Source: Anthoceros angustus
Taxonomy: Eukaryota > Plantae > Anthocerotophyta
NCBI GenBank assembly: GCA_010909165.1
Contig: MU008162.1
Location: forward strand, 744,001-808,000
Reading direction: 5' to 3'
DNA: 64,000 nucleotides
Shown: positions 11,232 through 64,000 of the stretch, piece by piece
Layout of the letters: the number at the start of each line of letters is the position of its first letter
How positions within the stretch are numbered: the stretch's first letter is position 1
The notes under the pieces: generated by a model
Databases searched by the model: none
Seen by the model: only the letters and a program-made list of their open reading frames with translations
Told to the model about the DNA's origin: nothing
Made by a program: the position numbers and the translations under genes

Positions 11232-11964
11232 CTTATGAAATTGACAACACCGGTTATGAATCTGCATACACTTTGCAGCCAATCTTTTGCTATGTTCCAT
11301 TTACTACATGGAGTCCATTACTAAACATTTCACTACAAACTTTTACTATAGCAATTTACTACTGACTTTTTATCATAGAATTTTACAACATACTTTTACT
11401 ATAGAATTTTACTATGTATTATTACTATAGAATTTTACTACATATATTAACTATGATGTTTACTACAGAATTTTACTAGTAATATTTACTATAAAATATT
11501 ACTACAGGGTCTTTTTCTACAACGGAGAGATTTACAACGGTACCCAGCGGGAATTTACAACGGACTAACGGATTACTTAACTGTGATTAATTAACTATGG
11601 TCAATATGTGATTAACCAAACCCACTAATTTAACTGCAGATAATATATTATAGTTAGCTAATCTCGGTCAACTAATCATTATTTTTAACCACGATTAGGC
11701 CAGTAGTAAAGTCCGTGGTTGTTCAACTAGTAAATACCGTGGTAAAAGGTATGGTAATTTAAAGATTAACTAGTGTACGGTAGAACGTACTCCGTACATA
11801 TTTCGTATAGAATACAGAGTATAGCCATCATATACGATGTACTGGACTTTACTACGGACACTAACGCTATGTGTTTACTACTGATGTTTTACTACGGGAG
11901 TAGTAATGACCGTTGTAAAGTCCGTAGTAATGTCCGTGGTAAAAGTACACTTTTCCTAGTAGTG

Positions 11965-14335: not shown

Positions 14336-14975
14336 GAGGAGATCAAGTGAGCCAAAAAGGGGTTCAAACTCCAGCCTTTTAAGCCCAAGCGGCGGGTTGA
14401 GAGCGCCAAAGCATTGGACTTCAATAGAATTCTTCTTCTTCATTGGACTGTAAACGCAAATTCCTTTTCCGGCACGTAAGACAACTAAAATGAGTTTGCT
14501 GTCGTGGTAGATGTATGTCTGCCGACAAACTTTGCATCCCGAACCTTCCACGTACTTTTACCGTACAAACGAAGATGGTTTTTCAGGTACGGGGAAAAAC
14601 GAGTTACTCGAAGTCACGGGCCCCTTGAAAGGTCGGAGCTGGCGAGGCTTGCAAAAAAATGGGGTCTGGAATGAGGCGATGCTGGCTTAGGCTGTTTCGG
14701 TAGCGATTGCGCAGAGAATGTCTTGGTACCAGGTGGAGGATCTCTTACCGGTTACAGTCCAAAGCAGGAAGTTTGGCTCAGATCTACGACAATGAGCTCG
14801 CAAATATCATGTTGCTCTGGTTTCTACATGAGGATCTGATAGTGGCGGATGCCAATCTCCTATGCTTGTTTTGCTTAGGTCGCAGGTCTGTAATTCAATT
14901 CATGGTAGGTGAAGTGGTCAATTGGCCGGAGGCGACCAGCGATTTGCCGGTTGTGGAGCCTGTGATCCGACCGAC

Positions 14976-35880: not shown

Positions 35881-36065
35881 GTTATGGCCTATAAGACCTG
35901 GTGATGTCCCTTGGCAAGCGCCGAACGGGAAGTCGTTGAAATTCGGTGTCGAGGTTGCGGGATCTGGTGGAGCGGAAATGGATATGGGCCCAAGCATTTG
36001 CGCAGCAGGCGCAGCGGACTCGGTTTTGCTGTTCTCCACGGGGTCAGTCTATCCTTGTGCTGATC

Positions 36066-41147: not shown

Positions 41148-41225
41148 GTATCACAATTATATCGGATCACCTGTTGATACTCGTAAGTATCACAATTATA
41201 TCGGACCACATGTTGATACTCGTAA
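41148..41225. repeat. 39-bp direct tandem repeat, 2 copies, at the left edge of the large array
   Basis: GTATCACAATTATATCGGA(T/C)CAC(C/A)TGTTGATACTCGTAA at 41148 and 41187. Confidence 0.9.
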
Positions 41226-42678
41226 GTGTTCAAAATGATATCGTACTTTGAAATATCGATCTTTCCTTCGCAGGATCAGCTCCCATGATGGCGTCTCTCA
41301 AGGCTGACTTAACTTTTACCGGGGCTTAGGGCTGACTAACGTTTATCAAGGGATTAGGTCTTTCGTGCAAATGTGATGGTAACAAACCCTACCGATATAG
41401 TTTGCAACGTGTCATCATTAACCCTGGGTTGGGTGGCGACGGATGGGCGACTCCCAAGGTCCACAAGTACACCCCATGCAAGAAGGTCATGCTTACATGC
41501 CCTCGCTAGTGAGACTCATGGGGCCATGGGTAAAAGGTTTTGAGGCTCATTAAATGTTGTGCTAAAGCCTACCATAGCTAAAAGAATGCGGTAGGTCTCC
41601 CCTTTCCTATGTGGTAGCCTTCTTGCAATAGTGTGCATCCATCGCCAGAAAGGGTAACTTGGCAAACGCTATTTACAAGACGACGTTGAATTCAAGAGGC
41701 GTTGCATCTTGACTCCGGTGGTAAGTGGGCTCTTCCCTATGCGACTACAACATCTTGTGTGGCGGCAAGGGTGGACAATCCGGGAGCTAGTCCCCTTGGC
41801 ACAGGGCACTTTATTGGGTTGGTCCCCACCACCATATTGTAGATGGGACTTTCCATCTCTACAAATTTTATGAAGTCTCCATTCTTATAAAGTCTCCAAA
41901 TTCACTAAAATTATATGGTAAAATGTTATAACGTGCTACAACTTTGTTACTTTATCTTAGTATCTAGCATATGGAGAGTAGGATAAACATACCAAACCTA
42001 AAGACTATAAATGGTCAATAACAATCAATAAAAGATTAGAATGGACTCGATTCTTATTATCTTGATTTTTCTCAAACAATCGGTCAAGCTATTTTGGTTT
42101 AGTGGCCTCGGTTCGAAAGTGCAGCACCACGTGTACCGAAAAGCTTGGCGTTGACCATAGAACTCTAGCCCTTTCGCCGACACGGGTTTTATAAGAGCCT
42201 CTTCAATCGAAACCCTTTGGTGGGTACTACGACCATCGTTACCTTGGCATGATGGCTGCTATTTCGGAAGGTATCTAGATTGGGACTTATTTTATATATA
42301 GCACATCGAGTGTAGAGATATATATGCCAAGCTCAAGGGCTATATATGTGGTGCCCCATGCATCAAATTTATAAGCGAGGCAATTATACCAAGTTGAGAG
42401 GTACCGAGATGGACCAAGGATTGTACTAAGTGTACATCAATATGCTATCTTATTTGCTAGTATAGATCTAGTAATGTTTGTTGCTCATAGGAATAGCGAC
42501 CACGTGGTATCAAAGCTTTGACACGTTTGCAAGTAGTACCTTCACAGTTGTCTATCCTCAACTTCTTATAAACTTACTCAAAGCGCTTCTTGTGAACTTA
42601 CAATTAACAATTAATTCGTGTTGATCTAGCAAGGCTACATGGAAAGGTTGGACGTGGATCAAATGTGAGGATGATACT

Positions 42679-44276
42679 ATGTCTCATAATGATATCCAAG
42701 TTGGTGGGGATGACATTGACAACTTCTTAGATGCATACGGCCTCCCTACGTTCGTGGGAGACTTCAAAAGCGTCTTGGATCACAAGGTGAGGCTCACCTG
42801 CAACATGGCGTGGGAGGTTGGCAACCCGCACGTACAGCAACGCGGCGATCTCTTGTGGATGGAGAAGGCAAATGTAAGGATTGGAGAAAGAAATTGTACC
42901 GAGTGTGATTCTCAATCAGAGGAGCCGCACTTTTTGATTCACGTTCTACAAGGCAACCTGGTAAAGCGGCCCCTAGATGGAGCGGAAACCATGGATCCGT
43001 CGTTGTGGAGCACTTTGCCGGAAGACCTGTTGAAGAGAAGTTTGTCCATGCTTCCGGCCACCAGTAGGGTGTGCTTAGCTAGTGTACAGAAGTCATGGAG
43101 GGACCTCCTCTTAGGCCGCGACTTTAAGCGCTTGCAGAAATGGGTCGACGCACCACCAGTTGTTGAGTCAGCACTGCCGATTTGCGTTGTGGAGTTCATG
43201 CCTGGTAGATTGGCACGATGCAGGCGTAGGCCCTCAGACATTGCGTGCCAGGCTAAGGCACAAGGGCTTGAGGTTCGGAGGCAAGGAATCTTGGCGGAAA
43301 TGGGTTACCTCCTTGGGACAATTGTTTTGTGCAGCGAGGATTACTATGCTTCTATCACAACGAGCCTATAGACACCATTGCCGATATCTATGTTGCTAAC
43401 CTCTAGCCCAAACTTGGTCATGTTTGCCGAGAATGCTCCCCGAGAGACATAGCTTTAACAAGCGCACATTCGAGAAAGCGCAGCTTGAATCACTTGAAGA
43501 CGGGTATTTCCGGTTCACGATTGTGAGTTATAACATAAGAGAATACCCGGGAGTATCAGCTACCATCTACTCAAGTTCTACGGGCGCTTGGAGAACGGTG
43601 GTTCTCGAGGAGGCGTACTGGATTTGGAGTTTTGGTTTCAAAGCTTGCAAGCGGAACTGAATTCATGGATTGTGCTATATGGCCACAATATGTTATCGCC
43701 AAGAGAAACTATATGTTGCCACATGTATGCACCACATTCTCCGATTATGATGATATTGTCATCTCGTCTACAACTTGGAAAATGGAGCGCAATTACAAAT
43801 TCAAGAACCAAGATCGATGGTTTAAAGGAGATGATACTTTTGTACTTGCACATCGTCCGTGGTACTTGGTTAGCATAATGGAGTATCGTGGGAGAGTGTT
43901 GTGTGCCGATTGGAGGATGAGTCGTGATGACCTTGAATACGGATTTGGGAGTTGGATTTGGATAGTCTTACTTGGCACAAACTCTCCAAAGATTCGTAAA
44001 CAAGCATTGACGGAGGCCGATCTTCAAGAACCAAATGCGGAGTTATATGTTCTCATGGAAGACAGTTCCATGCATTTTTGGAGAAGGCGATGGTGGATAA
44101 CATTTGCCTCACCCTTGGGGTTAGGGACGTACCTACCATCACCCACACCACACCCACTTAATTGCTTATAATATCACAACCAATTCGTGGTCCGTTGTGT
44201 TGAGTGACTTGGTCCGTGACCACTTGAATGCCCGTACCATATTTTCTCTCCCAATTTTCAAAATCTTGGCTTGTGA
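42679..44276 (+). pseudogene. F-box protein gene, copy 1 (apparently frameshifted)
   Basis: MDPSLWSTLPEDLLKRSLSMLP...ASVQKSWRDLL at 42991. Downstream YVANPL..TW..LP, IYSSSTGAWR and IAYNITTNSW are typical of plant F-box C-terminal propellers. Ends FSPNFQNLGL*. Confidence 0.8.
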
Positions 44277-47028
44277 AGATGTGGTATGATTTTTAGAAAT
44301 AAAATGATTATTTCTTAATTGTTATCCTCCACATCGATTAAATCACAAACACTCTTGTTAACCCTAGGCGATGAAATGTCCCAAATTGGAACATTCTTAC
44401 GGTCTTGAGCGCTTTACAAACAATTAATTATTCAAGAATTGAAAAGAATATTTTCTTTCTTTTTACAAGGTGTTGTTCAACATTGGGCGCTCCCTCCTCC
44501 CATGCTTTTATCACAAAAACTTATGCGAAATGGGCGAAGAATCAAGAGAGATGCATGGGAAATGTCATTGCCACTTCTCGAGCCCCATCAAGGCATGTAA
44601 CCAGCTCGGCCAAACTAAGTCAACTGCCATGACAATAACTCTACACCACACTACGTTCGACAAGCAAGCTCGGCAGGCTAGAGTCGCAGTGACAACTAAT
44701 TGCGAGGGCCACGACTAGGAGATTGGGCACATGCCGGTCCTCTTGTTTGGAGGCGTCGACAATTCTTTCCCAGTCGAGTTTGGGACACTTCTCTCTATTT
44801 GTGGAACACATCGTTCAACTCTACAAAGTGTGGCGAATGAAAGAATATGCTCATAGAGTTTTTGACGGGCTTGGTCAAAAGATGTGATCAAAAGTTTTTG
44901 ATGAGCGTCATCTTCGTTAGCTCGGCTCAAGAGTTGGGTTAAGTATGATCACCATAGCTTTTATATTTGTTGTTGGAATGAATCTTCTCCTAGCTCGTTG
45001 GATAAGATTAGTATGGAGAACCTTGGACATAATTTTATAATTTAAAACAAAATACAAAATATTTAATTTCCAAGTATTTGTTTTTTTGTCCGGAATGGTT
45101 GCCCTGGTTGAACTCGGAATGGTCGGGTTGTTTTCGAAATTGTCCCAAAGCGAATTATCATCTTCTTTATGATCCACTTCTACACGTGAAAACCACTTCC
45201 AAGGACGCCGTAGCATTAGCCCAATGTTTTCTCACAATGATAGCAATCTCCTTCCGTCCACCCAAAAGGCTTCCCACCAATTGTACTCTTTAGCGTCACC
45301 TATGGACGCAAATCTTTAACCCTTCCTACAAATGGGCCACACCTTGAGTCGGTGATAGGATACCCGCTCCTTCTTGTCCCCCCTAGCTTCACTGCATGCA
45401 GTAGGCGGTGCTAAGGAGGACGCCCGACCCGGCCGGCGCCTTCATAGCACCACCGTCGGTGCATGCGGAAACTAGGGAGGCTGGCAGGCGCCCTCCCCTA
45501 GCACACCGCCTATGGGCGGCCGTCGGCGTCACAAGTAAGTATCACAATTATATCGGACCACATGTTGATACTGTAAGTGTTCAAAATGATATATATGCTG
45601 AAATATCGATCTTTCCTTCGCAGGATCGGCTCCCATGATGGCTCTCAAGGTGACTTAACTTTTACTGTGGGCTTGGTGACTAACGTTTATCAAGGATTAG
45701 GTCTTTCGTGCAAATGTGATGGTAACAAACCCTACAGGATATAGTTTGCAAACGTGTCATCATTAACCATGGGTTGGGTGGCGACGGATGGGCGACTCCC
45801 AAGGTCACAAGTACACCCCATGCAAGAAGGTCATGCTACATGCCTCGCTAGTGAGACTCATGGGGCCATGGGTAAAAGGTTTTGAGGCTCATTAAATGTT
45901 GTGCTAAAGCCTACCATAGCTAAAAGAATGCGGTAGGTCTCCCCTTCCTATGTGGTAGCCTTCTTGCAATAGTGTGCATCCATCGCCCAGAAAGGGTAAC
46001 TTGGCAAACGCTATTTACAAGACGACGTTGAATTCAAGAGACGTTGCATCTTCACCGGTGGTAAGTGGGCTCTTCCTATACGACTACAACATCTTGTGTA
46101 TGTAGGCAAAGGGTGGACAATCCGGGAGCTAGTCCCCTTGGCACAGGGCACTTTATTGGGTTGGTCCTCACCACCATATTGTAGATGGGACTTTCCATCT
46201 CTACAAATTTTATGAAGTCTCCATTCTTATAAAGTCTCCAAATTCACTAAAATTATATGGTAAATGTTATAACGTACACGCAACTTTGTTACTTTATCTT
46301 AGTATCTAGCATATGGAGAGTAGGATAAACATACCAAACCTAAAGACTATAAATGGTCAATAACAACAATCAATAAAAGATTAGAATGGACTCGATTCTT
46401 ATTATCTTGATTTTTCTCAAACAATCGGTCAAGCTATTTTGGTTTAGTGGCTTGCTCGAGGAGTGCAGCACCCACGGTACCGAAAAGCGCTGACCATAGA
46501 ACTCTAGCCCTTTCTCGCCGACAGTTTTATAAGAGCCTCTTCAATCGAAACCCTTTGGTGGGTACTACGACCATCGTTACCTTGGCATGATGGTGCTATT
46601 TCGGAAAGGTATCTAGATTGGGACTTATTTTATATATAGCACATCGAGTGTAGAGATATATATGCCAAGCTCAAGGGCTATATATGTGGTGCCCATGCAT
46701 CAAATTTATAACTCGAGGCAATTATACCAAGTTGAGAGGTACCGAGATGGACCAAGGATTGTACTAAGTGTACATCAATATGCTATCTTCGCTGCTAGTA
46801 TAGATCTAGTAACAGTGTTTGTTGCTCATAGGAATAGCACTGACCACGTGGTATCAAAGCTTTGACACGTTTGCAAGTAGTACCTTCACAGGTTGTCTAT
46901 CCCTCAACTTCTTATAAACTTACTCAAACTGCTTCTTGTGAACTTACAATTAACAATTAATTCGTGTTGATCTAGCAAGGCTACATGGAAAGGTTGGACG
47001 TGGATCCGTTAAACAGGAGGATGATACT

Positions 47029-48595
47029 ATGTCTCATAATGATATCCAAGTTGGTGGGGATGACATTGACAACTTCTTAGATGCATACGGCTCTCCACGC
47101 CCGTGGGAGACTTCAAGCGCCTTGGATCACAAGGTGAGGCTCACCGCAACATGGCGTGGGAGGTTGGCAACCCGACGACAAAGAACGCGATCTCTTGTGG
47201 ATGGAGAAGGCAAATGTAAGGATTGGAGAAAGGAATTGTACCGAGTGTGATTCTCAATCGAGGAGCCGACTTTTTGATTCACGTTCTACAAGGCAACCCG
47301 GTAAAGCGGCCCTAGATGGAGCGGAAACCATGGATCCGTCGTTGTGGAGCACTTTGCCGAAGACCTGTTGAAGAGAAGTTTGTCCATGCTTCCGCCACCG
47401 AGGGTGTGCTTAGCTAGCAAGTCATGGAGGGACCTCCTCTTGGGCCGCGACTTTAAGCGCTTGCAGAAATGGGTCGACGACCACCGCTTGTTGAGTCAAG
47501 ACCGCCGATTTGCGTTGTGGAGTTCATGCAGTAGATTGGCACGATGCGCGTAGGCCCTCGGACATTGCGTGCGGGCTAAGGCACAAGGGCTTGAGGTTCG
47601 GAGGCAAGGAATCTTATGAAATGGGTTACCTCCTTGGGACAATTGTTTTGTGCAGCAGGATTACTATGCTTCTATCACAACGAGCCTATAGACACCATTG
47701 CCGATATCTATGTTGCTAACCTCTAGCCCAAACTTGGTCATGTTTGCCGAGAATGCTCCCGAGAGACATAGCTTTAACAAGCGTGACATTCGAGAAAGCG
47801 CAGAATCACTTGAAGACGGCATATTTGCGGTTCACGATTGTGAGTTATAACATAAGAGAATACCCGGAGTATCGCTACCATCTACTCAAGTTCTACGGCG
47901 CTTGGAGAACGGTGGTTCTCGAGGAGGCGCACTGGATTTGGAGTTTTGGTTTCAAAGCTTGCAAGCGGAACTCGAATTCATGGATTGTGCTATATGGCCA
48001 CAATATGTTATCGCCAAGAGAAACTATATGTTGCCACATGTATGCACCACATTCTCCGATTATGATGATATTGTCATCTACGCCTACAACTTGGAAAATG
48101 GAGCGCAATTACAAATTCAAGAACCAAGATCGTGGTTTAAAGGAGATGATACTTTTGTACTTGCACATCGTCCGTGGTACTTGGTTAGCATAATGGAGTA
48201 TCGTGGAGAGTGTTGTGTGCCGATTGGAGGATGAGTCGTGATGACCTTGAATACGGATTTGGGAGTTGGATTTGGATAGTCTTACTTGGCACAAACTCTC
48301 CAAAGATTCGTAAACAAGCATTGACGGAGGCCGATCTTCAAGAACCAAATGCGGAGTTATATGTTCTCATGGAAGACAGTTCCATGCATTTTTGGAGAAG
48401 GCAGTAATGGAGATAACATTGCCTCACCCTTGGGGTTAGGGACCGTACCTACACCATCACCCACACCCACACCCACTTAATTGCTTATAATATCACAACC
48501 AATTCGTGGTCCGTTGTGTTGAGTGACTTGGTCCGTGACCACTTGAATGCCCTGTACATATTTTCTCTCCCAATTTTCAAAATCTTGGCTTGTGA
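47029..48595 (+). pseudogene. F-box protein gene, copy 2 (apparently frameshifted)
   Basis: Same sequence as copy 1, with the F-box ATG at 47330. Its indels fall at different positions. Confidence 0.78.
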
Positions 48596-50129
48596 AGATG
48601 TGGTATGATTTTTAGAAATAAAATGATTATTTCTTAATTGTTATCCTCCACATCGATTAAATCCACAAACACTCTTGTTAACCCCTAGACGGCGAAATGT
48701 CCCAAATTGGAACATTCTTACTAGCCTTGAGCGCTTTACAAACAATTAATTATTCAAGAATTGAAAAGAATATTTTTCTTTCTTTTTACGGTGTTGTTCA
48801 ACATTGACGCTCCCTCCTCCCATGCTTTTATCACAAAAACTTATGAAATGTAACAAGAATCAAGAGAGATGCATGGGAAATGTCATTGCCACTTCTCGAG
48901 CCCCATCAAGTCAGTGTAAACTGTGCTCGGCCAAACTAAGTCAACCCGCCATGACAATAACTCTACACCACACTACGCTCGACAAGCCCGCAGCTAGAGT
49001 CGCGGTGACAACTAATTGCGAGGGCCACGACTAGGAGATTGGGCACATGCCGGTCCTCTTGTTTGGAGGCGTCGACAATTCTTTCCCAATCGAGTTTGGG
49101 ACACTTCTCTATTTGTGGAACACATCGCTTCAACTCTACAAAGTGTGGCGTAATGAAAGAATATGCTCATAGAGTTTTTGACGCTTGGTCAAAAAGATGT
49201 GATCAAAAGTTTTTGATGAGCGTCATCTTAGTTAGCTCGGCTCAAGAGTTGGGTTAAGTATGATCACCATAGCTTTTATATTTGTTGTTGGAATGAATCT
49301 TCTCCTAGCTCGTTGGATAAGATTAGTATGGAGAACCTTGGACATAATTTTATAATTTAAAAACAAAAATACAAAATATTTAATTTCCAAGTATTTGTTT
49401 TTTGTCCTGAAACAATGGTTGCCCCGTTGAACTCCGGAATGGTCGTGGTTGTTTTTCTAAATTGTCCCAAACTCGAATTATCATCTTCTTTATGATCCAC
49501 TTCTACACGTGAAAACCACTTCCAAGGACGTTGAGCATTAGCCCAATGTTTTTCTCCACAATGATAGCAATCTCCTTCGTCCACCCAAAAGGCTTCCTAC
49601 CAATTGTACTCTTTAGCAACACCTATGGACGCAAATCTTTAACCCTTCCTACAAATGGGCCACACCTTCCGGTGATAGGATACCGCTGCCCCTTCTTGTC
49701 CCCCCTAGCTTCACTGCATGCACCGTAGGGGCGGTGCTAAGGGAGGACGCCGACCGCGCCTTCCTTAGCACCACCCGTCGGCATGCGGGTGGAGTTAGGG
49801 AGGCCACCGGCCGGCCGCCTCCCCTAGCACACCGCCTTAACACGGCCACAAGTAAGTAAGTATCACAATTATATCGGACCATGTTGATACTCGTGAAGTG
49901 TTCAAAATGATATCGATTTCAAATATCGATCTTTCCTTCAGCAGGATCACCCATGATGGCGTCTCTCAAGGCCGACTTAACTTTACCAGGCTTAGGGCTG
50001 ACTAACGCTTATCAAGGATTAGGTCTTTCGTGCAAATGTGATGGTAACAAACCTACCGGATATAGTTTGCAAACGTGTCATCATTAACCCCGTGGGTTGG
50101 GTGGCGACTTGGATAACTCCCAAGGTCCA

Positions 50130-53100
50130 TGTGGGCTATGCACTTCCTGGGGTTAGAAATAAGTGGGGTTTGTTTTTTGTAGGTTGGAATAGTAAAATAA
50201 AGGAAAAGGAGGAATAAGCACGGATGGCGCCTGGACGACTTCTGAGGCGACCACCCGAGTAAGCAACGGACCCCGATACCACTATGGAAACTCCGGATAC
50301 CCTTGGAGTACGGTAAGTCCGGACCTCACCCAGGATAAGATAAGTACGGGAAAGTAACTGAATGGAGTCGTGAGGATGACTAGGCGGCGCCACGTGGACG
50401 GCCCCGAGGTCGGCATGCAAGCAGGCCAGACCGTAGTTTCGCCAGGGCCGACAGGCAGTATTCACGCCGGCGCGGCGCAAGGCTAGAGGCCCGAGGGGTG
50501 AGTACGCCATGCACTCGCGCCATGGATAAATAAGAGGCGCCTTCCCAGCGCTCAAGAAAGAGGGAATTACTTCCAACCTCCGATTTCGCCCTCGCCCGCA
50601 TCCGGCCTTTGGAGCTTCGCGCCAAGGTGTCCCCACGCTACCCACGAGGAAGGAGGAGGAGGAGGAGGAAGCACGCCAAACCAAGAGAGGACAAGAAGTC
50701 ACACCCAAAAGCCGGAGGAGGTGCCATGGACCTCGGAGGAGCGCAACATTGTGACCCGCGCTATCCGGACTTCGGGCCCCGGGCCGGAGGAAGTGGAATT
50801 GCGAGTGGCATCCGGACGTGTTCCAAATGGTCTCGACCTTTGACAACATACCTAGTCCGGAGTTTGCCCGAAGATGCCGGGCGATCAACAAGGAGGTCCG
50901 ATCCAAGAACCTCCGGAGGACCCGAGGCGATGGACCTTGAGGTCCCGAGGATGGCCTACAAATCAAGGAGGAAGAAGGGGCGTGGTGCAGGCCCCTTAAG
51001 GCGAAGGGAAGATAGGGCGCCGCGGCGATGAGGCTCGAACGCAATGACAACCAACGGATGGTTGATATCCGATCTGGCGGGCCGGTCGAGTAAGGCGGTA
51101 GCCGGATCATTGTCCATTGAACTCGCCACCAAGGTGGATCACCTTGGTGATAACCTGGTATTCTCGCGCCCAATGGGAAGAGAGCGGACTGGGAAGGATT
51201 ATCTTCCCCTGCCTGGGCCAGAGGAGCGAAGGCAGCGACCCACCCATACCGATTCATGTATGGGGACATTTCGAGCTCTGAAGGAGGAGAGCTTGAGGCG
51301 CCCGGGGGCCGGAGGCCCCGCTGTAGAGCGCAAGGGCGCCTGAGGTGGGGGTCGCCCTTCAAGACCAAGCGGACTCGGGAGGAGGACGATCGAGGATTCC
51401 TGACTCACGTCGAGCGAACCCCTCACCACCTGTGGAAGTTTGGGAGGCGATTCCCCTTCCCTCCTTTTGGTGCCCCTCCGAGCAGTGAGGGAGCGATGCC
51501 GGAGGGCGCTGCACCGGCTGCAATAACAAAACAACCACGACGCCGAGCCCCGACGAACCCGGGAGCCAAGAGGCGGAAGACCGCTTACCAACGCAAAGAC
51601 TCGAAGGTGCCAGACTTTACCCCCGCCACCTGAGTGGCAAGAGGTCAAGAGGCGTAAGGAGGGCAGAAAGGGACGTGGCCCAAGGAGCAGGAGGTCAGCA
51701 GCCCCACCTCGAGCCGGTCCCTGCCCCGATGAAGGGGCAAAAGAGCTTGCTCCCGACCCCTCACCTCCTCCGAGCCCTGTGAGAAAGAGGCACAAAGGAG
51801 TTAGAGGCCAAGAGGGCCAAGAGGGTGAGACTGACCACCACTGTGACCCGAGGGTCCCGATTAGGTCCGAGAACCCACCGACTTACCGATCAGATGGAGG
51901 TCCTTGGCGATCGAGAAATGCCGGCCCCACTACGGACTTTGTGGGGGCCTCACGCCGCGGGAAGAAACACGGCAAGTCCTGCCACCGCCATGGACGGAAT
52001 GCTTTGGGGTCTCGTGGTACATGGAGAAGACCTGTGAAGTGGAGGCCACCCGAGGAGGATGGTGGAACCCAAGAGCAAGTGAAGGCGGCGAGGAAAAGGC
52101 GGAGTCCCTCGCTCGGATCGAGGAAGGAAGCGCCGGGTGGCGAGGCCAGGCGGTTGAGGGCCGGGCCAAGGTTCTTGTATGTGAGCAGTGAAACAAGCTC
52201 GAGAGGCCCAGCGGGCGGAGGACCTTCTGCGGCGAGAGGGAGGCGGAAGAGGCCGGGCTGGAGAGCTCGGGACTGGCGGAGGCGGCCCGGCTAAGCGGCG
52301 CCAAGTGGGCGAGGCCAGTAAAAGCGGCGAAGAGTGAGCCGCGGCAAGCGGCAGGATCACTCTGGGCGTGATCGGGCCGGTGGAAAGTCGGTATGACGGA
52401 GGCTAACTCGAAGGCGGAGGCGGCGGAGGCGGCCTCGGGAGATAGGGGATCTCAAATGCAGTGCGAGTAGAAGGAGGCGGCGGCGGATGGAGGGCAGCAA
52501 GGACCTGGAGCTACAACTCCAAGATCGTCGGAGGCGGCGGTGATTCTCAGCGAGAGAATCCACGACTTGAGCACGAAGCGAGTGCCTCGGCTCCGTCGAG
52601 GCGGAGGAAAATCGGCGACTATCGAGGAGTTGGGCGTTGCCGAGCTGAGAAGGCTGGAGGAAGTCGGTCGGACGGAGGTATCAGCTTTGGAGAGGGAGGC
52701 GGAGCTAAAGGCGAGAATGAGCGGAGGCGAGCAGGCGAGAAAAGAAGGCTGCTGGTCCGGTGAGAAAGGCGGAAGGAGCAGCTGCGCTATGGCGGTGGTG
52801 GCGATGGAGAAGCAGCGGAGGCTGGGCGGTGGAGCAACGGCAGTGCGGGAGGTGACGAGGCCTTGTAGCCTCGCGTGTCTGACCCGGCTCCAGATCCGTC
52901 GGAGAGGTGGCCCAACAAGCGGCACGCCCGGCTCCGGAACACTTATGGCGGAGGGAGTATCGGGTGCTCGGGCACACGTGGAAGAGCAATTCAACAAGTC
53001 GATTCGGACTTTGCCTATTACCAGAGCTCTGGCGATGAAGCCTCGGCGGCGCAAGCAGACGGACCCACGGAATCGAGAAGGAGATGAAGGCCACGGGGCA

Positions 53101-54394
53101 CAGGACCCTAGTGGCCTGTTTGGAGATAGCGGAGGCGGAGGAGCGGCGGAGGCGAGCGAGGAGGCGGCGGATGCGGCGAGGTAAGCACCCGCACCTCACC
53201 ATGGAAGGAGGGCCAGCGAAGGTCACTTGAGGCGATCGGGAGCAGCGGAGGACTTGAGGAGAGCCACGGAGGAGTCCGTGAGGAGGAAACCCGGGTGGGC
53301 GTGAGTCGGACTTTGTCGGACCCCGGAGGCCGGACCACAGTCGGACCCGTGTCGTCGGACCACGAGTCGGACCCGATAAGTCGGACCACAGTCGGACCCG
53401 TGTCGTCGGACCACGAGGTCGGACCCAACAGTCGGACCTGGCGGACCCGGAAATAAGCGGACTCACGAGTTGAGTCGAGGCAGACCTCGAGGCCGGTGCG
53501 GCGATGAGGAGCCCCGCCGACTTACGCTAGGGAGCGAATGGTGGTGGCCCCGTGAAGGACCCGAGGAGGCGAGGGAGGATGGCGTCGTGGTGCGGTTGTC
53601 GACCCGCCGTGTAACAGGCGGGATTCGGGAGAGGAGGGGCCCGCCTCACGGATCATCCGATTGGGTGCACAAGCTGTCGGGGAGTTGGACCACCCATTCC
53701 GGGGGCCAGGACCTTCCAGACGGTCGTGAAGGAGATAGGGGAAAATGGTAGGCGGCCGATTAGGGTATCTGGTGGCTATCATTTCGAGAATAGGGGTGTA
53801 ATAAAGCGCCTTGGCGCGATATAAGAGTGAGGCTGCTCTAGTAAAGCATCTTTCTCTTGGTGTTGATGCAGCGTTCTTGCGAGACCTTTGTGAGTCTTCT
53901 TGCTAACGTGAGTCTGAGTCAGCGGCGAGCCAGCGGCTCGGGAGATTGATCAAGGTCATTGGCGGACTTAGCGTTGTGGTGTGTGCGGGGAAGGGTGGCG
54001 GTGACCGTGCTCGTCCGGGCAGCGTCCGGCCAGAGCAATGTGGCGGAGGAACTCGGGAGGCGTGTAGAGCACGGAGGCCGGCGGAGCAGCGGAGGAGGTC
54101 GGCTGCGTAACCAGCGTCTTTTCTAAGGCGAAGAGTGTAGCGTGAGGAGAGAGGAAAGGGGGATCGTGAGGATGTATGTGAGCAATCTGAGCAGGTCCTA
54201 AGCGTTTAGCCATAGGGCTGTCGGTGAAACGTTGTGAGTAGTTAGGAGTATGTGTGTGTGTTGAGGCGAGCAGGCGCTAAGGGCGGTAGAATCACACGAA
54301 GCAGCGATAGCAGGCCTATCATTCCCAGGAGCGGACTTCTTCCTGCGACACGGGATTGTCTGCTTGGTAGCCATCGGCAAAAGTCGCGCCCACA
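50130..54394. mobile_element. 4,265-bp GC-rich insertion with TGTGGGC...GCCCACA ends and a 5-bp TSD (solo-LTR-like)
   Basis: GTCCA flanks both sides (50125-50129 and 54395-54399), and the empty site is visible in units 1 and 2. No paired LTRs or gag/pol motifs were seen. There is Glu/Arg/Ala-rich coding-like sequence on the + strand at ~50.6-53.2 kb. Confidence 0.85.
53305..53450. repeat. GTCGGACC-core short repeat cluster, including a ~50-bp unit in 2 copies
   Basis: CGGACCACAGTCGGACCCGTGTCGTCGGACCACGAG is repeated, with about ten (G)TCGGAC cores. Confidence 0.85.
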
Positions 54395-55610
54395 GTCCAA
54401 GTACACCCCATGCAAGAAGGTCATGCCCTGCCTCGCTAGTGAGACTCATGGGGCCATGGGTAAAAGGTTTTTGAGGCTCATTAAATGTTGTGCTAAAGCC
54501 TACCATAGCTAAAAGAATGCGTAGGTCTCCCCTTTCCTATGTGGTAGCCTTCTTGCAATAGTGTGCATCCATCGACCTGTAGAAAGGGTAACCAGCAAAC
54601 GCTATTTACAAGACGACGTTGAATTCAAGAGGCGTTGCATCTTGACTCCGGTGGTAAGTGGGCTCTTCCTATACCCGACTACAACATCTTGTGGGCGGTA
54701 GGCGGCTTAAGGGTGGACAATCAGGGAGCTAGTCCCCTTGGCCTGGGCACTTTATTGGGTTGGTCCCCACCACCATATTGTAGATGGGACTTTCCATCTC
54801 TACAAATTTTATGAAGTCTCCATTCTTATAAAGTCTCCAAATTCACTAAAATTATATGGTAAAATGTTATAACGTGCCATACTTTGTTACTTTATCTTAG
54901 TATCTAGCATATGGAGAGTAGGATAAACATACCAAACCTAAAGACTATAAATGGTCAATAACAACAATAAAAGATTAGAATGGACTCGATTCTTATTATC
55001 TTGATTTTCTCAAACAATCGGTCAAGCTATTTTGGTTTAGTGGCCTCGGTTAGAGTGCAGCACCACGTGTACCGAAAAGTCTTGGCGTTGACCATAGAAC
55101 TCTAGCCCTTTCTCGACACGGGTTTTATAAGAGCCTCTTCAATCGAAACCCTTTGGTGGGTACTACGACCATCGTTACCTTGGCATGATGGCTTATTTCG
55201 GAAGGTATCTAGATTGGGACTTATTTTATATATAGCACATCGAGTGTAGAGATATATATGCCAAGCTCAAGGGCTATATGTGGTGCCCCATGCATCAAAT
55301 TTATAATCGAGGCAATTATACCAAGTTGAGAGGTACCGAGATGGACCAAGGATTGTACTAAGTGTACATCAATATGCTATCTTCACCGCTAGTATAGATC
55401 TAAGGTGTTTGTTGCTCATAGGAATAGCCCGACCACGTGGTATCAAAGCTTTGGCGTTTGCAAGTAGTACCTTCACGGGTTATCCCTATACTTCTTATAA
55501 ACTTACTCAAACCGCTTCTTGTGAACTTACAATTAACAATTAATTCGTGTTGATCTAGCAAGGCTACATGGAAAGGTTGGACGTGGATCCTAAAGCAGGA
55601 GGATGATACT

Positions 55611-57145
55611 ATGTCTCATAATGATATCCAAGTTGGTGGGGATGACATTGACAACTTCTTAGATGCATCGGGCTCTCCTACGTCCGTGGGAGACTTCAAA
55701 GCGCCTTGGATCACAAGGTGAGGCTCACCGCAACATGGCAGGTTGGCACGCCACGTGGCGATCTCTTGTGGATGGAGAAGGCAAATGTAAGGATTGGAGA
55801 AAGGAATTGTCGAGTGTGATTCTCAATCGGAGGAGCCGCACTTTTGATTCACGTTCTACAAGGCAACCTGGTAAAGCGCCCCTAGATGGAGCGGAAACCA
55901 TGGATCCGTCGTTGTGGAGCACTTTGCGGAAGACTGTTGAAGAGAAGTTTGTCCATGCTTAGGCCACGCAAAGGGTGTGCTTAGCTAGTGTCTGAAGTCA
56001 TGGAGGGACCTCCTCTTGGGCGCGACTTTAAGCGCTTGCGTAGATGGGTCGACGCACCACCGGTTGTTGAGTCAAGACCGATTTGCGTTGTGGAGTTCAT
56101 GCACGGTAGATTGGCACGATGCGCGTAGGCCCTCGGACATTGCGTGCGGGGCTAAGGCACAAGGGCTTGAGGTTCGAGGCAAGGAATCTTGGCGGAAATG
56201 GGTTACCTCCTTGGGACAATTGTTTTTGCGCGATTACTATGCTTCTATCTGTGAGCCTATAGACACCATTGCCGATATCTATGTTGCTAACCCTCTAGCC
56301 CAAACTTGGTCATGTTTGCGAGAATGCTCCCAGAGACATAGCTTTAACAAGACATTTGAAAGCGCGCTTGAATCACAAGACGGCATTTGGTTCACGATTG
56401 TGAGTTATAACATAAGAGAATACCCGGAGTATCATTACCATCTACTCAAGTTCTACGGCGCTTGAGAACGGTGGTTCTCGAGGCGTCTGGATTTGGAGTT
56501 TTGGTTTCAAAGCTTGCAAGCGGAACTGAATTCATGGATTGTGCTATATGGCCACAATATGTTATCCGCCAAGAGAAACTATATGTTGCCACATGTATAG
56601 ACCACATTCTCCGATTATGATGATATTGTCATCTCGTCTACAACTTGGAAAATGGAGCGCAATTACAAATTCAAGAACCAAGAAGTGGTTTAAAGGAGAT
56701 GATACTTTTGTACTTGCACATCGTCCGTGGTACTTGGTTAGCATAATGGAGTATCGTGGAGAGTGTTGTGTGCCGATTGAGGATGAGTCGTGATGACCTT
56801 GAATACGGATTTGGGAGTTGGATTTGGATAGTCTTACTTGGCACAAACTCTCCAAAGATTCGTAAACAAGCATTGACGGAGGCCGATCTTCAAGAACCAA
56901 ATGCGAGTTATATGTTCTCATGGAAGGATGCCCATGCATTTTTGGAGAAGGCGTTGGTAGCGGAGATAACATTTGCCTCACCCTTGGGGTTAGGGACCAT
57001 TCACACCATCACCACCCACACCCACTTAATTGCTTATAATATCACAACCAATTCGTGGTCCGTTGTGTTGAGTGACTTGGTCCGTGACCACTTGAATGCC
57101 CTGCATCATATTTTCTCTCCCAATTTTCAAAATCTTGGCTTGTGA
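55611..57145 (+). pseudogene. F-box protein gene, copy 3 (apparently frameshifted)
   Basis: Same sequence, with the F-box ATG at 55900. ORF 56756..57145 ends FSPNFQNLGL*. Confidence 0.78.
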
Positions 57146-58139
57146 AGATGTGGTATGATTTTTAGAAATAAAATGATTATTTCTTAATTGTTATCCTCCA
57201 CATCGATTAAATCCGTCAAACACTCTTGTTAACCCTAGACGATGAAATGTCCCAAATTGGAACATTCTTACGGTCTTGAGCGCTTTACAAACAATTAATT
57301 ATTCAAGAATTGAAAGAATATTTTCTTTCTTTTTACGGTGTTGTTCAACATTGACGCCCTCCTCCCATGCTTTTATCACAAAAAACTTATGCGAAATGGG
57401 CGAAGAATCGAGAGATGCATGGGAAATGTCATTGCCACTTCTCGAGCCCCATCAAGTGTAACCGCTCAGCCAAACTAAGTCAACTGCCATGATAACTCTA
57501 CACCACTCGTTCGACAAGCTCTGGCGGGCTAGAGTCGCAGTGACAACTAATTGCGAGGCCACGACTAGGAGATTGGGCATCATGCCTCTTGTTTGAGGCG
57601 TCGACAATTCTTTCCCCAATGAGTTTGGGACACTTCTCTCTATTTGTGGAACACATCGCTCAACTCTACAAAGTGTGGCGAATGAAAGAATATGCTCATA
57701 GAGTTTTTGACGGGCTTGGTCAAAAGATGTGATCAAAAGTTTTGATGAACGCCATCTTCGATTAGCTCGGCTCAAGAGTTGGGTTAAGTATGATCACCAT
57801 AGCTTTTATATTTGTTGTTGGAATGAATCTTCTCCTAGCTCGTTGGATAAGATTAGTATGGAGAACCTTGGACATAATTTTATAATTTAAAACAAAATAC
57901 AAAATATTTAATTTCCAAGTATTTGTTTTTTTGCGGAAACGATCGAGTTGCCCTGGTTGAACTCCGGAATGGTCGGGGTTGTTTTGAAATTGTCCCAAAC
58001 CGAATTATCATCTTCTTTATGATCCACTTCTACACGTGAAAACCACTTCCAAGATGTAGCACATGGCCCAATGTTTTTCTCCACAATGATAGCAATCTCC
58101 TTCTGGTCACCCAAAAGGCTTCCCACCAATTGTACTCTT

Positions 58140-60000
58140 GGGGTGCTGGGCACACACCTATCTGATGAAGCATCTGGAAGACATATCTCCATCGAAGGCG
58201 GATACCAATGGATGGAAGCCCATGTATTGTGGGCTCACTTTACCGAGATGAGGGTTCCGCCACCACCACAACACTATGTCGACAAGCGGCGGAAGATGAA
58301 TTTCATTGAGCAAGTAAGGTACTGTAGATGAGTTGCGATTGCAAAGAGAGATGGTGTCAATATGAGCATGAACTGGAAGTTCAACTTTGTATAAGGTGCT
58401 AGGCTTGATAGATGATGATGAGGCCGAGAGGATGAGCAAGATAAGCAAAACAAGGTCGACAATCGCACACACATATCCTTTGCATCGCCAAACCGAAGGG
58501 AGAGTGTGGGAAAATGTTGATAAGATCTTCACGAAGTGGGAGGCCATGGAGTTGCAGAACAAGCCAAACATGTTGTCACAGGAACAAGCAAGAAAAGCAA
58601 GGGAAGGCTGCGGATGAGGCGAAGTCGGTGGACCAAAGTTTGTGAAGCCAAAAGACATGCAAGGAAGCCTTGGCGAAGTTTTCGTGGTATTCCACCGGGT
58701 GAGACGGCCAAAAATGTTGATCGATGTCACCGAGAAGGTCGACAGTCTCATAGACCTCAATGGTATGGCCAAAGAGATCACTCTTGGAAGAAACTACATG
58801 TGATCCAAGTGGCTATGGCGAAGCATCTAGGCTGCAATTCATTCGAGATGGTGAGGAAGGAGTACGGTGCACTCAACGGATGAAGTCACGATTTGCACCG
58901 CTCAAGGGAAGGTGAGTTTCTTATTCTTACCAAGATAGAACTAAGAGGCGGGCATGCAGCGCCCTCCCTATTGTCCCCGCAATCGACTTTCGCAATCTCA
59001 CTTATGTGTGTTATTTTGCAGCAAGTTAAAGATGTTGAAGACCAAAAGCTACCAAGATTTCCGTGCTTTTATATTAGAGGTCCACACATGGAAAGGGCTG
59101 GAGGATGAGCAGAGGGCACTTGCGGACATGGACATGGAGGAAGGGCTGCAATCTTTATGCCCAAAACAGAGGAGTTAGTGAAGTATCAAGTGGTGCAGAG
59201 ATGTGGCGTAAATGAGAGGGTTTCTTTGAGTCAAGTATACAAGGTTATGGATGTCCCTAGATTCAACAAGGGAAGTATGATGTCAAACTTGAGCAAGAAA
59301 TGGCAAACATATTTCATTCCTTCCATGATATGACAATGTGCGACGAGATCAGAATGATAGTAATGCATGGTGTGGAAGAGCTGCATATTGTCAGGGAGAG
59401 TATGAGGAAGTGGTGTGCAGGTGGAGGCATGGTCTCATTTGTTTGGGACAAAACTAATATGCACAATGACCAAGGAGGCTTTGACACTGTGGAGTACATC
59501 ACTGTGGGGTGGGGTGTGACGTGCACGAGCAAGAAGACAAAGGTGTCCATGCTGCCGAATACCTTGCAGGGCTCTTTCAATAATGGACGAGCGGTTATTG
59601 CACACGACGCTGTGGTGAAGAAGTTATTATACATGTCGCCGACAAGCGGTTGTTTCCGCGATCGAGGCCACCGGGTCTAATGATGAAGTTGATCAAGAAC
59701 TTCTCAGAAGGAGATTGGATATTAGATGCATGTGGAGTGGAACAACGACATTAGCGGCACTCCTTTGTGGCCGAAATTGCATTGCCGTGGAGGTTGACAA
59801 ACGCTGTGCCGAGTTCATTCCGCAAAGGATTCATGGCTATGAAGTTTTACCGGACGCAGAGGAGGAGTTGACCCATGAGCCACACCGAGGCCCCACCCAC
59901 CTCGGGCAAAAGAATTGAGCTTGTCCGAGAAGGATGCATCCCGAGCCCGTAGTCCCACTTGGGTTGAGCAGATGAAAGAGAAGACGGAGATCTTATAGAT
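58140..60000 (+). pseudogene. Gene with a C-terminal beta-class N6-adenine/N4-cytosine DNA methyltransferase domain (N6_N4_Mtase-like), 5'-truncated, apparent frameshifts
   Basis: In order: motif IV-like VMDVP(R) at 59244-59261; FVWDK...VEYITVGW (ORF 59300..59680); RPPGLMMKLIKNFS-EGDWILDAC-GSGTTTLAALLCGRNCIAVEVDKRCAEFI.QRI at ~59665-59832. Putative GT-AG intron at 58912-59021. Confidence 0.75.
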
Positions 60001-60639
60001 GATCGCCAAACCGTCTGCATTGTGGCATCCCGACTATTTGGAGAAGAGCAAGGAGGATGCGGTCGATATGGAAATGCTATGGTCGAAAACGACAATTTCG
60101 AGGATCCCGAGGATGCTCGACCAAGGACGGAAGTTGTGTTAGATAGCGTGTCGGGACAATGCCTCCGAGCTCCCCTCAAGCCGAGAATCCTCGAGGGAAG
60201 TGAGTCTAGTTTAGTTTTGAAAGTTCCATAACCGCATGGTTAGAATTAGACAGGCCGCATGCCGCCTGCCTCCTTCTTTAACTATGAGCGACATTGTTAT
60301 TCGTTTTGTCAAGGATGACTTCTGTTGACGGCTGCAAAATATCCATAGAGCTCGTTTCACACCTATAAGACATTCGTCGTGCACCGTACGAGAGGTCCAG
60401 AATGCACCAACATACCCACATTCGTGTGAAAGCACCCACAAAACGGGGATGCGCAAACTGAAGCACTAAACTTGCAGACTACCGGACTGGATGGGGAACC
60501 CGAATTTGGTCCCGGGTTTTCGAAAGCGGGTTCGTATATTCCGCCGGTTCAAATATTATGGTGTTCATGAGTGCCATGATCTGTCAGGTCATAGTGAGAG
60601 AGTTCATAAGTGTCCTCACTATCTTCAGGTGTGGGAACA

Positions 60640-61880
60640 TGAGTGTGTGCTCCCACTGACGCCCAAGTACTGGTTTCATCAAATGTAACACTCCGAGCAT
60701 AGATGACTCTATTGGTAGGGACATCATATAGCTTGTAAGCTTTAATCCCTCTCAGATACCCCAAAGATAAGCAATGCATGACTTATCCGACAGCCATCGC
60801 TTCGCTTAGGGATGAAGGCATATGCTAGACACCAAGGTCCTCAAGTGTTGAATAGAGGGCTTCTCAGAAAAGCCTCATAAGGAGTTTTGCCTTCAAGCTG
60901 CGGTGGTGGGTAACCTGCTCGAGAAAAGTTGAAGTCATCACCAAGAGGGTAGTGGCAAATGAGCATCATGTAACAATGAGGAGACCATCTCTCGCAATGT
61001 GAGATTCAAGCGCCCGCCACTCCATTCCGTGGAGTGTATATACGAGTTGGCCCAATGCCTTCGCCTTTACGTAATCTGGAATTCATTAGATGTAAATTCC
61101 CGCCATTATCGATCTCGTGTCTTGAGTCGCTTTTCCGCCCAACGCTCATAATTTGATGTATTCCTTGAAGTAGGAGAAACATTCGCTTTTGTTCTTCGTG
61201 ATATAGGTGGTGACAACCGCTTCTTGTCATCAGAACGTTAGAAAATAACGCCCACCTCCTATGGACGCTTGAGATAAGGGTCCACATAGGTCAAGATGTA
61301 CAAGCTCAAGGAGATCATCGACGATGAGGTGCTTTGTTCTTGAAGGCGACTTGGTGTTTCTTCGACAACACACAAGCCTCACATAAAGGTATGGCGGTCA
61401 AAGGGCCAATAGGTCCATCTTTATACAGTCACTCACCAATTTTTGCAGCTTTGCCATGAGGGTGACCCAAACGTGCATGCCACAACTTAGACTTTGCTGT
61501 TTGTTGTGCAGATGCAAGGGAGACGTCTTGTGTCAGGTGGGACTCTGCTATTCCACTGTGCAAATGGAGACGGAATAGATCGTGGTCCGAAGACCCATGT
61601 GCAAGGACCTTTCTAGTGTCAATAGCATCGATAATTCTACAATCTGTCCTAGTGAATACAACGTGACTGTTGTTATCTGCATTTAATCGTCTGACTGAAA
61701 TAAGGTTTCTAGTCATTTCTGGCACATAGTAGACTTCTAACAACATGAGTGTGATCCCTGTAGGAACTAGCAACTCAAGCGTACGCGACCGGTGAGACTA
61801 GAGACTGTCGTCCCCAAGGTAAACATACCGATCCGAAAAGACCTATATGTTTTGAAAGCATTTCTATCAAAGCGGATGTG
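60640..61880 (-). mobile_element. Ty1/Copia pol fragment (protease-adjacent domain, GAG-pre-integrase, integrase), degenerate
   Basis: VYYVPEMTRNLISV, LWHARLGHP, YTPRNGVA (compare YTPQQNGVAE) and CLSLGY..GIKAYKLYD...VIYARSVTFDE. Confidence 0.85.
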
Positions 61881-62399
61881 CGTGCACTTTTGTATCTAAA
61901 TACCATTCATCTATTGGTTTTGATTAGCTTTGGCGAGAAGGCAAGTGGGAAGCGACAATGGACTATGAATTCCCTAGTCCCAAAGAGGGGAGAGGGGGGC
62001 GGCGGCATGGGTGGGGAGCCTGGCCTCAACATATCTAACACGGTGAGGAGGAGTGGTGGAGTGACTTGGGAGGATCAAGAGGAGATCGCAACTATTGTGG
62101 ACAATAACATCGGCCTTTGTCTCGAAAAGACGATTGGAAGTGGTATGTGATCTGCGGCAGATGCACTTGTACCCAAGTTCCGGAGGAGGCTATATTGGGC
62201 GAAGCCTTATTGCGAGGCGTGCCTCCACGGACATGTACTTGGGAGCTTACAGTGTGGAAGAGGCGAACAAGAGGTCGGCGGATGAATGGTGACATCATGG
62301 AGATAAAAAAGGTATGTTTATTGTCACCCCTTGTGAGGGGACACTCACAACACAGGCATTACAGGTTGCAAAGGTCTTGAGTGTGCACATGACCGATGA

Positions 62400-64000
62400 C
62401 CCCTACTTCTGGTGCAGTGGCCAGGAGCACCTGAGATGCATACGAGGGCAAGTATGTCGGGAATACTTTGTTAGGACCGGGAGGACAGAGAACTACCTCC
62501 TACCAACAAAGGTGCAAAAGCATGGAAGCCTCCCAACATTGAGTTGTTTGTCCATAAGGCGGTCATTGTGTACTATGGGTTCAATCTCACTTCTAGGAAA
62601 CATCATGCTGGCGGATAAAAAGCTATCAAAGAAGTTAAGTGCCCTCCGTCCCCATCTTCAACCACTCCCTCGTGTGGGCGGAGGATGATGGGGATAGCGA
62701 GTCTTGGGCATGGAGAACCCGACGGTCTCGAGTCGGTGAGGAGTGAATAACCCGGCTTGAAATATATTCCGATCATGGTCCGCTCCTAAGAACTTATGGC
62801 ACAACCCTTTGTAACACCTTTGCGATGGCATGCCGCACTCCTTCCGACCACATTTTGTGCGTCTATTCCTAGTGGCCCCTTCCATTGTCGGCTGCCATGG
62901 CTCTGTTATTAGTGGATTCGTTTAATGGTGGCGCCAACCCAATGTTTCCGTGAAACTTGGCAGCCCCTTTCGAGCAGTATGCCAAATTGTGGTTTTGTTG
63001 AGGGTTCACGGGAACATGGTACACTACAAGAGATTTCTCCGCTCACGGATATCAAAAACCATGTTGGACTGTTTGGTGCAGGAATGGCTAAGGGCCTTTC
63101 GCAAGGTGTGCATGCGATGGCGCATCACTGGCGATCGCGTTATGATGGTTTCTCACCTTTCTACCATAGAGGAACCGCACATTTTCCATACCTTGCCACC
63201 GTAAATGTGAACCCGAGATGCAAAAGTGGATTCCATTCCTTGATAAGACAATACTCCATCCTGTGCGATCCTTTTCCTTTCTGTCCTTAGAGCTAGCGTG
63301 GTTGTAGGTCCAATCTCATTTGGAATAAAAGACAAGAACTCCAGCCATCTTCTGTTTCCCATAACGGTGAGGTCGAATCTTTTACTCCGAATAAGCAGTT
63401 ACTTTCCTCCCAGCGTGTGTTGGTATGATAGATTGTTTAGCTTGCGAACATGACTTTAAACTTCCTGCAGCCTTTCCTGCTTCAAAGGCAGACGAAAGAA
63501 GCAGTCGGAACCTCAGTCGGGACCTTCACTGGGTTTGGCGTGAAAGCCTTGCTCAATATATCCCGCATGACGGGAAGAGTTTTTGCCTCTTTGTGCTTCA
63601 AATGTTTGGAAAAACATGAGAACATTTGGTCCACTGGTCATGTGTGTGACCTACAAGAAGAAAGCCCACCTTCACTTTTTCAAAAGTCCTCACCCACGAG
63701 CATATTCGATAAGCAAATGAGCTTGATTCTTGTTCTCCGACATGTGTTGTCCAAATTGCAAATATAGAACCTTGGAAGTAAGCCAACATATGTATGTATC
63801 ACATCTTGGATAATGCATATGGTTAAATTAGCATCATTCCAAATTTGCGAGAGTGTGATACGCCTGACTTGAACGTGATTGTGGATCATACACCCCACCA
63901 CATGGACAAGAATACACTTCTTCCTTTAGCTCCTTAGGCCATCTAAGTATATGCGGTAAGGATGTTTTTTCGATCCATGCCATCGATACATAACAACATG
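62400..64000 (-). mobile_element. CACTA (TnpD/Tnp2-like) transposase, C-terminal part, degenerate, continuing beyond the right edge
   Basis: Minus-strand remnants in the correct order: KHPYR...DG (~63960), IIQDVIHT (compare DVMHI, ~63800), VKVPT...SLKS (compare VKVPxGY...GLKSHD, ~63520-63450), KMCG (compare GP, ~63180) and MHTLRK (~63105). The left boundary is approximate. Confidence 0.55.

Follow-up and report, generated by a model that had tools for sequence, protein, structure and literature searches.

A decayed, 5′-truncated gene of DNA methyltransferase type, probably a passenger of a Sola1 transposon, in the land plant Anthoceros angustus

Why should plant DNA carry what looks like a DNA methyltransferase gene of prokaryotic kind? 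The question is raised by a stretch of Anthoceros angustus DNA (assembly GCA_010909165.1, contig MU008162.1, positions 744,001 to 808,000, forward strand), in which pieces scattered over several frames recall the beta-class enzymes that methylate adenine (N6A) or cytosine (N4C). These 64,000 nucleotides are called the window here, and all coordinates count from its first letter. The gene was noticed in an earlier inspection of the letters without database searches, referred to below as the sequence-only reading. Several questions follow. Is the resemblance real? Can the gene still work? To what kind of element does it belong? What might such a gene do for its carrier? The evidence makes it probable, in our judgment, that what is preserved here, in decayed form, is the 3′ two-thirds of an accessory gene of a cut-and-paste DNA transposon of the Sola1 superfamily. 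The parts of the relic are as follows.

58,140-59,918, plus strand: methyltransferase-like accessory gene relic, 5′-truncated, its coding signal spread over all three frames and broken by many stops
58,912-59,021, plus strand: putative 110-nt GT..AG intron, starting with GTGAGT at 58,912 and ending with TTTTGCAG at 59,021
59,252-59,266, plus strand: motif-IV-like DVPRF (GATGTCCCTAGATTC), non-canonical and recognised by eye only
59,668-59,739, plus strand: pre-motif-I block PPGLMMKLIKNFSEGDWILDACGV, in the frame 59,584-59,751
59,736-59,843, plus strand: motif I to III block (SGTT...AVEVD...), in the frame 59,619-59,915, the sole methyltransferase segment with statistical support
59,919-60,313, plus strand: perhaps a C-terminal tail or the 3′ region, of uncertain membership in the gene; frames are open at 59,968-60,228 and elsewhere

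The resemblance was examined with stop-free frame pieces and exons searched separately against Pfam, PHROGs and NCBIfam. The piece 59,715-59,915 matches PHROG 67 'DNA methyltransferase' (E 7.5e-7, profile positions 312-348 of 743) and three further PHROG families, phrog_8769 (1.4e-4), phrog_3008 (8.4e-4) and phrog_18293 (1.2e-3), while the NCBIfam profile for CcrM (NF050803) finds the motif I-III piece with an E of 0.023. Pfam family PF01555 (N6_N4_Mtase), named as a check in the sequence-only reading, does match this piece weakly (E 0.073, 13.4 bits, profile positions 192-217 of 221), but this best score of any single stop-free piece lies under the gathering threshold of 26.7 bits. The motif-I block is divided between two frames, PPGLMMKLIKNFSEGDWILDACGV occupying 59,668-59,739 in one and SGTTTLAALLCGRNCIAVEVD starting at 59,736 in the other, so that the LD..G / SGTT motif is interrupted by a frameshift near 59,736. 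Upstream of it the piece carrying the pre-motif-I block matches phrog_18293 'methyltransferase' at positions 42-73 (E 0.09-0.24), and downstream the match covers positions 72-113 of the 119 in the profile; because these positions are consecutive, the two pieces are collinear across the frameshift. An S-adenosylmethionine (SAM)-binding motif I of the FxGxG type, with motifs II-III, thus stands near the C-terminus, as in beta-class N6A/N4C enzymes. On the DNA METHYLTRANSFERASE question, the relic does contain a genuine C-terminal SAM-binding block of the beta-class amino-methyltransferases.

The same cannot be said of motif IV. All strings quoted in the sequence-only reading were found, but of the full beta-class motif order seen there only this C-terminal block stood, motif IV having no profile support. 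DVPRF, the sole candidate upstream of motif I, does not conform to the canonical (D/N/S)PP(Y/F/W), and no profile in the three collections detects the piece that contains it (59,109-59,330). Neither this piece nor the 139-codon middle piece gave a match to any methyltransferase family there. The distance of about 156 codons between DVPRF and motif I is plausible for the beta class, and a stretch following DVPRF, ..AGGGMVSFVW.., resembles the usual LKPGG motif. The contigs of the DNA run described below have no variant listed at the codons of DVPRF, a weak sign that the whole family shares this motif. An Asp in motif IV had been taken to lean toward N6-methyladenine (6mA); because motif IV is non-canonical, that preference is baseless. 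Further searches added nothing. The 139-codon piece (59,261-59,677) had 0 matches at E <= 1e-3 in a HMMER search of 1.84 billion representative proteins, and is either too decayed or partly out of its true frame; in the ESM Atlas its 139-aa translation reached a recognition value under the useful level, with unnamed viral clusters, and the result was discarded. With the motif-I piece, phmmer against PDB returned a spurious helicase alone (E 0.4), and tblastn against 50,697 phage records gave nothing at E <= 0.01.

Can the gene work? Three-frame translation reveals stops in all three plus-strand frames and a coding-like signal that switches frame repeatedly, without any intact gene, the last frame closing at the stop codon 59,916-59,918. 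The longest stop-free run is that of 139 codons, followed by runs of 119, 102 and 99 codons. About 1.1 kb upstream of the methyltransferase motifs had been described as coding-like; it is stop-ridden in each frame and starts abruptly at 58,140, exactly where the homology of a neighbouring repeated unit ends, and nothing else survives of the 5′ part of the gene. The supposition that the adjacent frames were formerly one open reading frame (ORF) is supported by one high-depth contig of the DNA run, in which an additional A follows 59,294; this is exactly the shift needed to bring the frame of DVPRF and that of the 139 codons together. Since stops and frameshifts occur in every frame and the 5′ part is lost, this copy is a dead, 5′-truncated fragment for which writing any mark is impossible.

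The sequence-only reading also placed an intron at 58,912-59,021. The GT..AG ends are present together with a pyrimidine tract, and arithmetic on the frame coordinates indicates that removing the 110 nt brings the open frame 58,754-58,912 into an open frame reaching 59,175. Summed contig depth falls to 5.5 in the bin 58,900-58,975, against 173 and 108 in the adjoining bins, and loose contig ends at 59,007 point to a diverged version in other copies. This depth pattern fits a non-coding stretch within a once-constrained gene; the intron is reasonable but not proven. A second intron-like stretch (GTGAGT..CAAG, 115 nt) lies downstream of the relic at 60,199-60,313 and shares with the first a central similarity of about 35 nt (TAGAA.TA..A.GC.GCATGC...CCTCC).

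To what kind of element did the gene belong? The neighbourhood of the relic contains the following.

54,389-58,139, strand not assigned: third, partial copy of a 4.3-kb repeated unit (92-93% identity by self-BLAST), a flank outside the element
60,549-61,773, minus strand: Copia-type retrotransposon fragment running from protease end to integrase end, without long terminal repeats (LTRs), between the two transposon genes
63,485-64,000, minus strand: putative Sola1-type (DUF7869) DDE transposase core relic, frameshifted, its N-terminal part beyond the window end

Ten minus-strand pieces from 62,661-63,998 were scanned for the transposase at E up to 10. DUF7869 (PF25273) alone was found, and none of the CACTA families (Transposase_21, Transposase_24 and similar). 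Three pieces match it collinearly along the profile, at 63,683-63,925 (positions 9-85, E 1.9e-6), 63,601-63,798 (positions 88-105, E 1.9e-4) and 63,485-63,637 (positions 107-141, E 2.9e-7). The relic carries the motifs LDNTCR / ENKNQ / LLVGHTHDQ / VDQMFSCFSKHL. Their counterparts in Sola1-1_Ec32, a Sola1 transposon of the brown alga Ectocarpus, are VDNTVAENKNN and, after about 25 residues, MMVGHTHIQIDQIFSCFAKAV (PMC12477816 supplement); by eye, the motifs DNT..ENKN, VGHTH.Q and.DQ.FSCF.K and the spacing of about 25 residues are common to both. The transposase relic is thus read as a Sola1-type DDE core, DUF7869 being linked to Sola1 by this by-eye motif comparison with one published sequence. 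It lies on the strand opposite to the methyltransferase relic, the two being convergent. In the sequence-only reading the gene stood tail-to-tail with a CACTA transposase, separated mainly by a Copia fragment; the convergent DNA-transposase relic and the Copia fragment are both there, but the transposase is of the DUF7869/Sola1 type. The Copia fragment measures 1.2 kb and has Pfam matches to gag_pre-integrs (1.6e-5) and Pol_BBD (1.9e-5) at 61,429-61,770 and to SH3_retrovirus (4.4e-9) at 60,549-60,776, all on the minus strand. Some 1.3 kb between it and the transposase core (61,800-63,150) match no family on either strand; they may represent the C-terminal end of the transposase with its 3′ region, or else a further insertion.

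The closest known system is Sola1-1_Ec32 itself (Genome Biol 2025, PMC12477816), a 21.5-kb transposon with an accessory gene opposite its transposase that encodes a 1,104-aa protein with ParB and N4C/N6A DNA methyltransferase domains. Its ends have AACCG..CGGTT termini, 282-bp terminal inverted repeats (TIRs) and a 4-bp target-site duplication (TSD; PMC12477816 supplement), and a 4-bp TSD with an AWWT preference has been given for Sola1 (PMC3845634 citing Bao et al., 2009). The Anthoceros locus shares with it the transposase core motifs, nested insertions of foreign transposable elements, a multi-copy state and, opposite the transposase, an amino-methyltransferase-like gene of prokaryotic type. 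It differs in its host, a land plant instead of a brown alga, and in that the copy here is dead, without ParB, with neither end visible and with DVPRF as its motif IV. In the paper the ParB-like domain is named before the methyltransferase domain; an N-terminal position of ParB is our reading of that order and is not stated there. No N-terminal ParB-like domain of the Ectocarpus type is present in this copy. The sequence-only reading suggested a search for a ParB-like or other DNA-binding domain upstream, and none was detected by Pfam, PHROGs or NCBIfam in the stop-free pieces of 58,023-59,330.

This lack is to be viewed together with the left edge of the relic. Self-BLAST places the copies of the 4.3-kb unit at 41,183-45,806, 45,535-50,127 and 54,389-58,139. 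In a three-way alignment of the junction, copies 1 and 2 extend about 500 bp further, whereas the homology of copy 3 stops exactly at 58,139. The breakpoint 58,139|58,140 therefore has a repeated, host-like unit on its left and methyltransferase-like sequence on its right, and truncation at 58,140 probably removed the ParB domain. The unit has weak F-box (42,679-43,368) and Kelch (56,756-57,142) matches and resembles a family of host genes arranged in tandem. Measured as 4.35 kb, it stands twice in tandem, 93% alike, within 41,183-50,129, with the partial third at 54,389-58,139. A piece of about 280 bp recurs at 41,183-41,463, 45,535-45,806 and 49,856-50,129, which are its start, middle and end, giving a layout like LTR-internal-LTR-internal-LTR. 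The unit may represent either F-box/Kelch genes clustered in tandem or a repeat of unclassified type. Between copies 2 and 3 lies a GC-rich block (50,130-54,388; GC 0.59-0.63). Its GC and AT skews are strong, each strand has long ORFs, and 53,315-53,416 is occupied by a 51-bp tandem repeat. This block was considered as the missing 5′ part of the methyltransferase gene and rejected, as it has no Pfam match and a composition unlike that of the relic.

A history of the locus can be outlined on this basis. The 5′ part of the gene, with any ParB domain, would have been lost at the breakpoint 58,140 against the host-like unit. The methyltransferase relic and the equally decayed transposase would have been parted by the Copia fragment. 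Nothing at the locus is functional. At the level of the family, and going by the literature, the ParB-like part would recognise repeats within the element itself and so target the methyltransferase part to the element's DNA, which the latter would mark. If DVPRF is family-wide, the methyltransferase part may serve merely as a DNA- or SAM-binding module. The sequence-only reading had proposed that the gene is cargo of a large DNA transposon, writing marks on it; in kind this is the best reading, but the superfamily was wrong and a dead copy writes nothing.

Several observations weigh against a Sola1 passenger gene. The N-terminal half of the methyltransferase domain, motif IV included, is without profile support, and the 139-codon middle piece is blank among 1.84 billion proteins. 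The ParB domain is missing from the pieces searched. DUF7869 is tied to Sola1 through motifs compared by eye with a single published sequence. Neither end of the element is visible, the left being truncated and the right lying beyond the window, and a TIR search in 48-64 kb gave just two short, chance-like inverted pairs, so that the two relics could derive from different copies.

This last point leads to the alternative that we would take most seriously, although we consider it unlikely: the methyltransferase and transposase relics, although of one family, would stem from separate copies or fragments of the element, juxtaposed by nested insertion and deletion. In favour of this are the cut at 58,140 and the composite make-up of the region, in which the repeated unit, the Copia fragment and unexplained DNA (61.8-63.1 kb) alternate with the relics; moreover, the cover by contigs of the family ends at 59,887, far short of the Copia fragment. 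On the other hand, the Ectocarpus element likewise has its genes on opposite strands, and the window contains no second copy of either the methyltransferase or the transposase gene.

How many copies of the gene exist in the genome bears on a different alternative. In one public DNA run, 173 short contigs align to 58,140-59,887 and none past 59,887. Their identity to the window copy is at least 99% for 71, 95-99% for 61 and 90-95% for 41, and numerous length differences of one and two bases separate them from it. The summed word depth over 58,140-59,887 peaks at about 240. With 173 variant contigs and such a depth, the relic is therefore one of a multi-copy family with many variants. Expression was a further check named in the sequence-only reading; the sole candidate RNA run placed no contig on the stretch, a result that does not prove the gene silent.

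A methyltransferase of prokaryotic type that was domesticated as a host gene, intact or as a pseudogene, without any tie to a transposon, would fit the intron-like GT..AG stretch and the eukaryotic setting, and there are precedents for it. DN4MT1a/b of Marchantia is a beta-class host enzyme with a TSPPY motif (bioRxiv 10.1101/2021.02.12.428880), and N4CMT of bdelloids is a domesticated eukaryotic enzyme for N4-methylcytosine (4mC; PMC8885841). Like the relic, both have a beta-class fold of prokaryotic derivation in a eukaryote, and DN4MT1 likewise comes from a bryophyte. However, DN4MT1 and N4CMT are intact, expressed host genes with TSPPY, whereas the relic is a broken, multi-copy transposon passenger with DVPRF in the place where DN4MT1 has TSPPY; it is not intact, no contig of the candidate RNA run falls on it, and it has no (T)SPPY. 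Its many stops and frameshifts, its high copy number with many variants and the adjoining transposase relic, which belongs to a family known to carry such a gene, make a host gene very improbable.

Less probable still is the proposal that a large CACTA (EnSpm) transposon carried the gene as cargo. In its favour are the giant Plavaka/EnSpm transposons of red algae (Bostrychia), the accessory genes of which include PAG2, an N6-adenine methylase joined to a SET domain, and PAG3, a ParB-like domain joined to a 2-oxoglutarate (2OG) oxygenase (bioRxiv 10.1101/2025.02.11.637652). The likeness is that of DNA transposons carrying DNA-modifying and ParB-like accessory genes, the type of system envisaged in the sequence-only reading. 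Those elements have a CMC/EnSpm transposase, in contrast to the Sola1/DUF7869 transposase here, and their domain make-up also differs. The transposase pieces of the window lack any match to a CACTA family, three of them match DUF7869 and their motifs are those of the published Sola1 element. Fusions of ParB and helix-turn-helix (HTH) domains to Dam-type enzymes are also described from chlorophytes and chytrids (Iyer et al.).

That the resemblance is due to chance and not to descent from a methyltransferase, or that bacterial DNA contaminates the assembly, is the least probable of all, for although the Pfam score is under its cut-off and the PDB, phage tblastn, Atlas and 1.84-billion-protein searches were blank for the pieces tried, the PHROG 67 match, the agreement of four methyltransferase families in all and the collinearity of the adjoining piece speak against chance, and the stretch is set between plant-type repeats and retrotransposon fragments on a single contig, which bears out the earlier view of a eukaryotic gene rather than bacterial contamination. 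Among prokaryotic and phage beta-class enzymes themselves (PF01555; PHROG 67; CcrM), which often adjoin or are fused with ParB, the relic finds its likeness in the SAM-binding block near the C-terminus (motifs X, I to III) and in a permuted order with a motif-IV-like site about 156 codons upstream. It differs from them in the intron-like stretches of its eukaryotic gene structure, its eukaryotic transposon setting, its Pfam score below the cut-off, the lack of a canonical (D/N/S)PP(Y/F) and the lack of a restriction partner.

The remainder of the window holds other features. Long uninterrupted host ORFs encode a protein with an adaptin N-terminal region (974 aa, 14,922-17,843), a calcium-dependent protein kinase (CDPK) with EF hands (518 aa, 19,405-20,958) and a pentatricopeptide repeat (PPR) protein with an E motif (828 aa, 35,946-38,429); the contig is therefore plant nuclear DNA, with few introns in those genes. 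A direct tandem duplication of 3 kb (6,153-9,139 against 9,132-12,100, 93% alike) contains short tandem repeats near 8,050-8,310 and 10,970-11,230, and a faint reverse-transcriptase trace is seen at 11,773-12,642.

What does the finding mean? The design of a Sola1 element with a methyltransferase passenger is already known, having been published for a brown alga in 2025, and the locus itself matters little. Full-text literature searches turned up no paper pairing a Sola1 transposase with a methyltransferase gene in land plants. The relic is a data point: Sola1 elements with a prokaryote-type methyltransferase-like passenger have also colonised a land-plant genome, in high copy number. There is an outside chance that this genome or those of its relatives hold a land-plant Sola1 lineage with intact members, in which a ParB-methyltransferase would mark the element's own DNA with 6mA or 4mC or, given DVPRF, would act as a non-catalytic DNA-binding module. 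If this is true, a land plant would have an epigenetic layer other than 5-methylcytosine (5mC) that is encoded by transposons, and domesticated enzymes, DN4MT1 among them, might have arisen from such elements.

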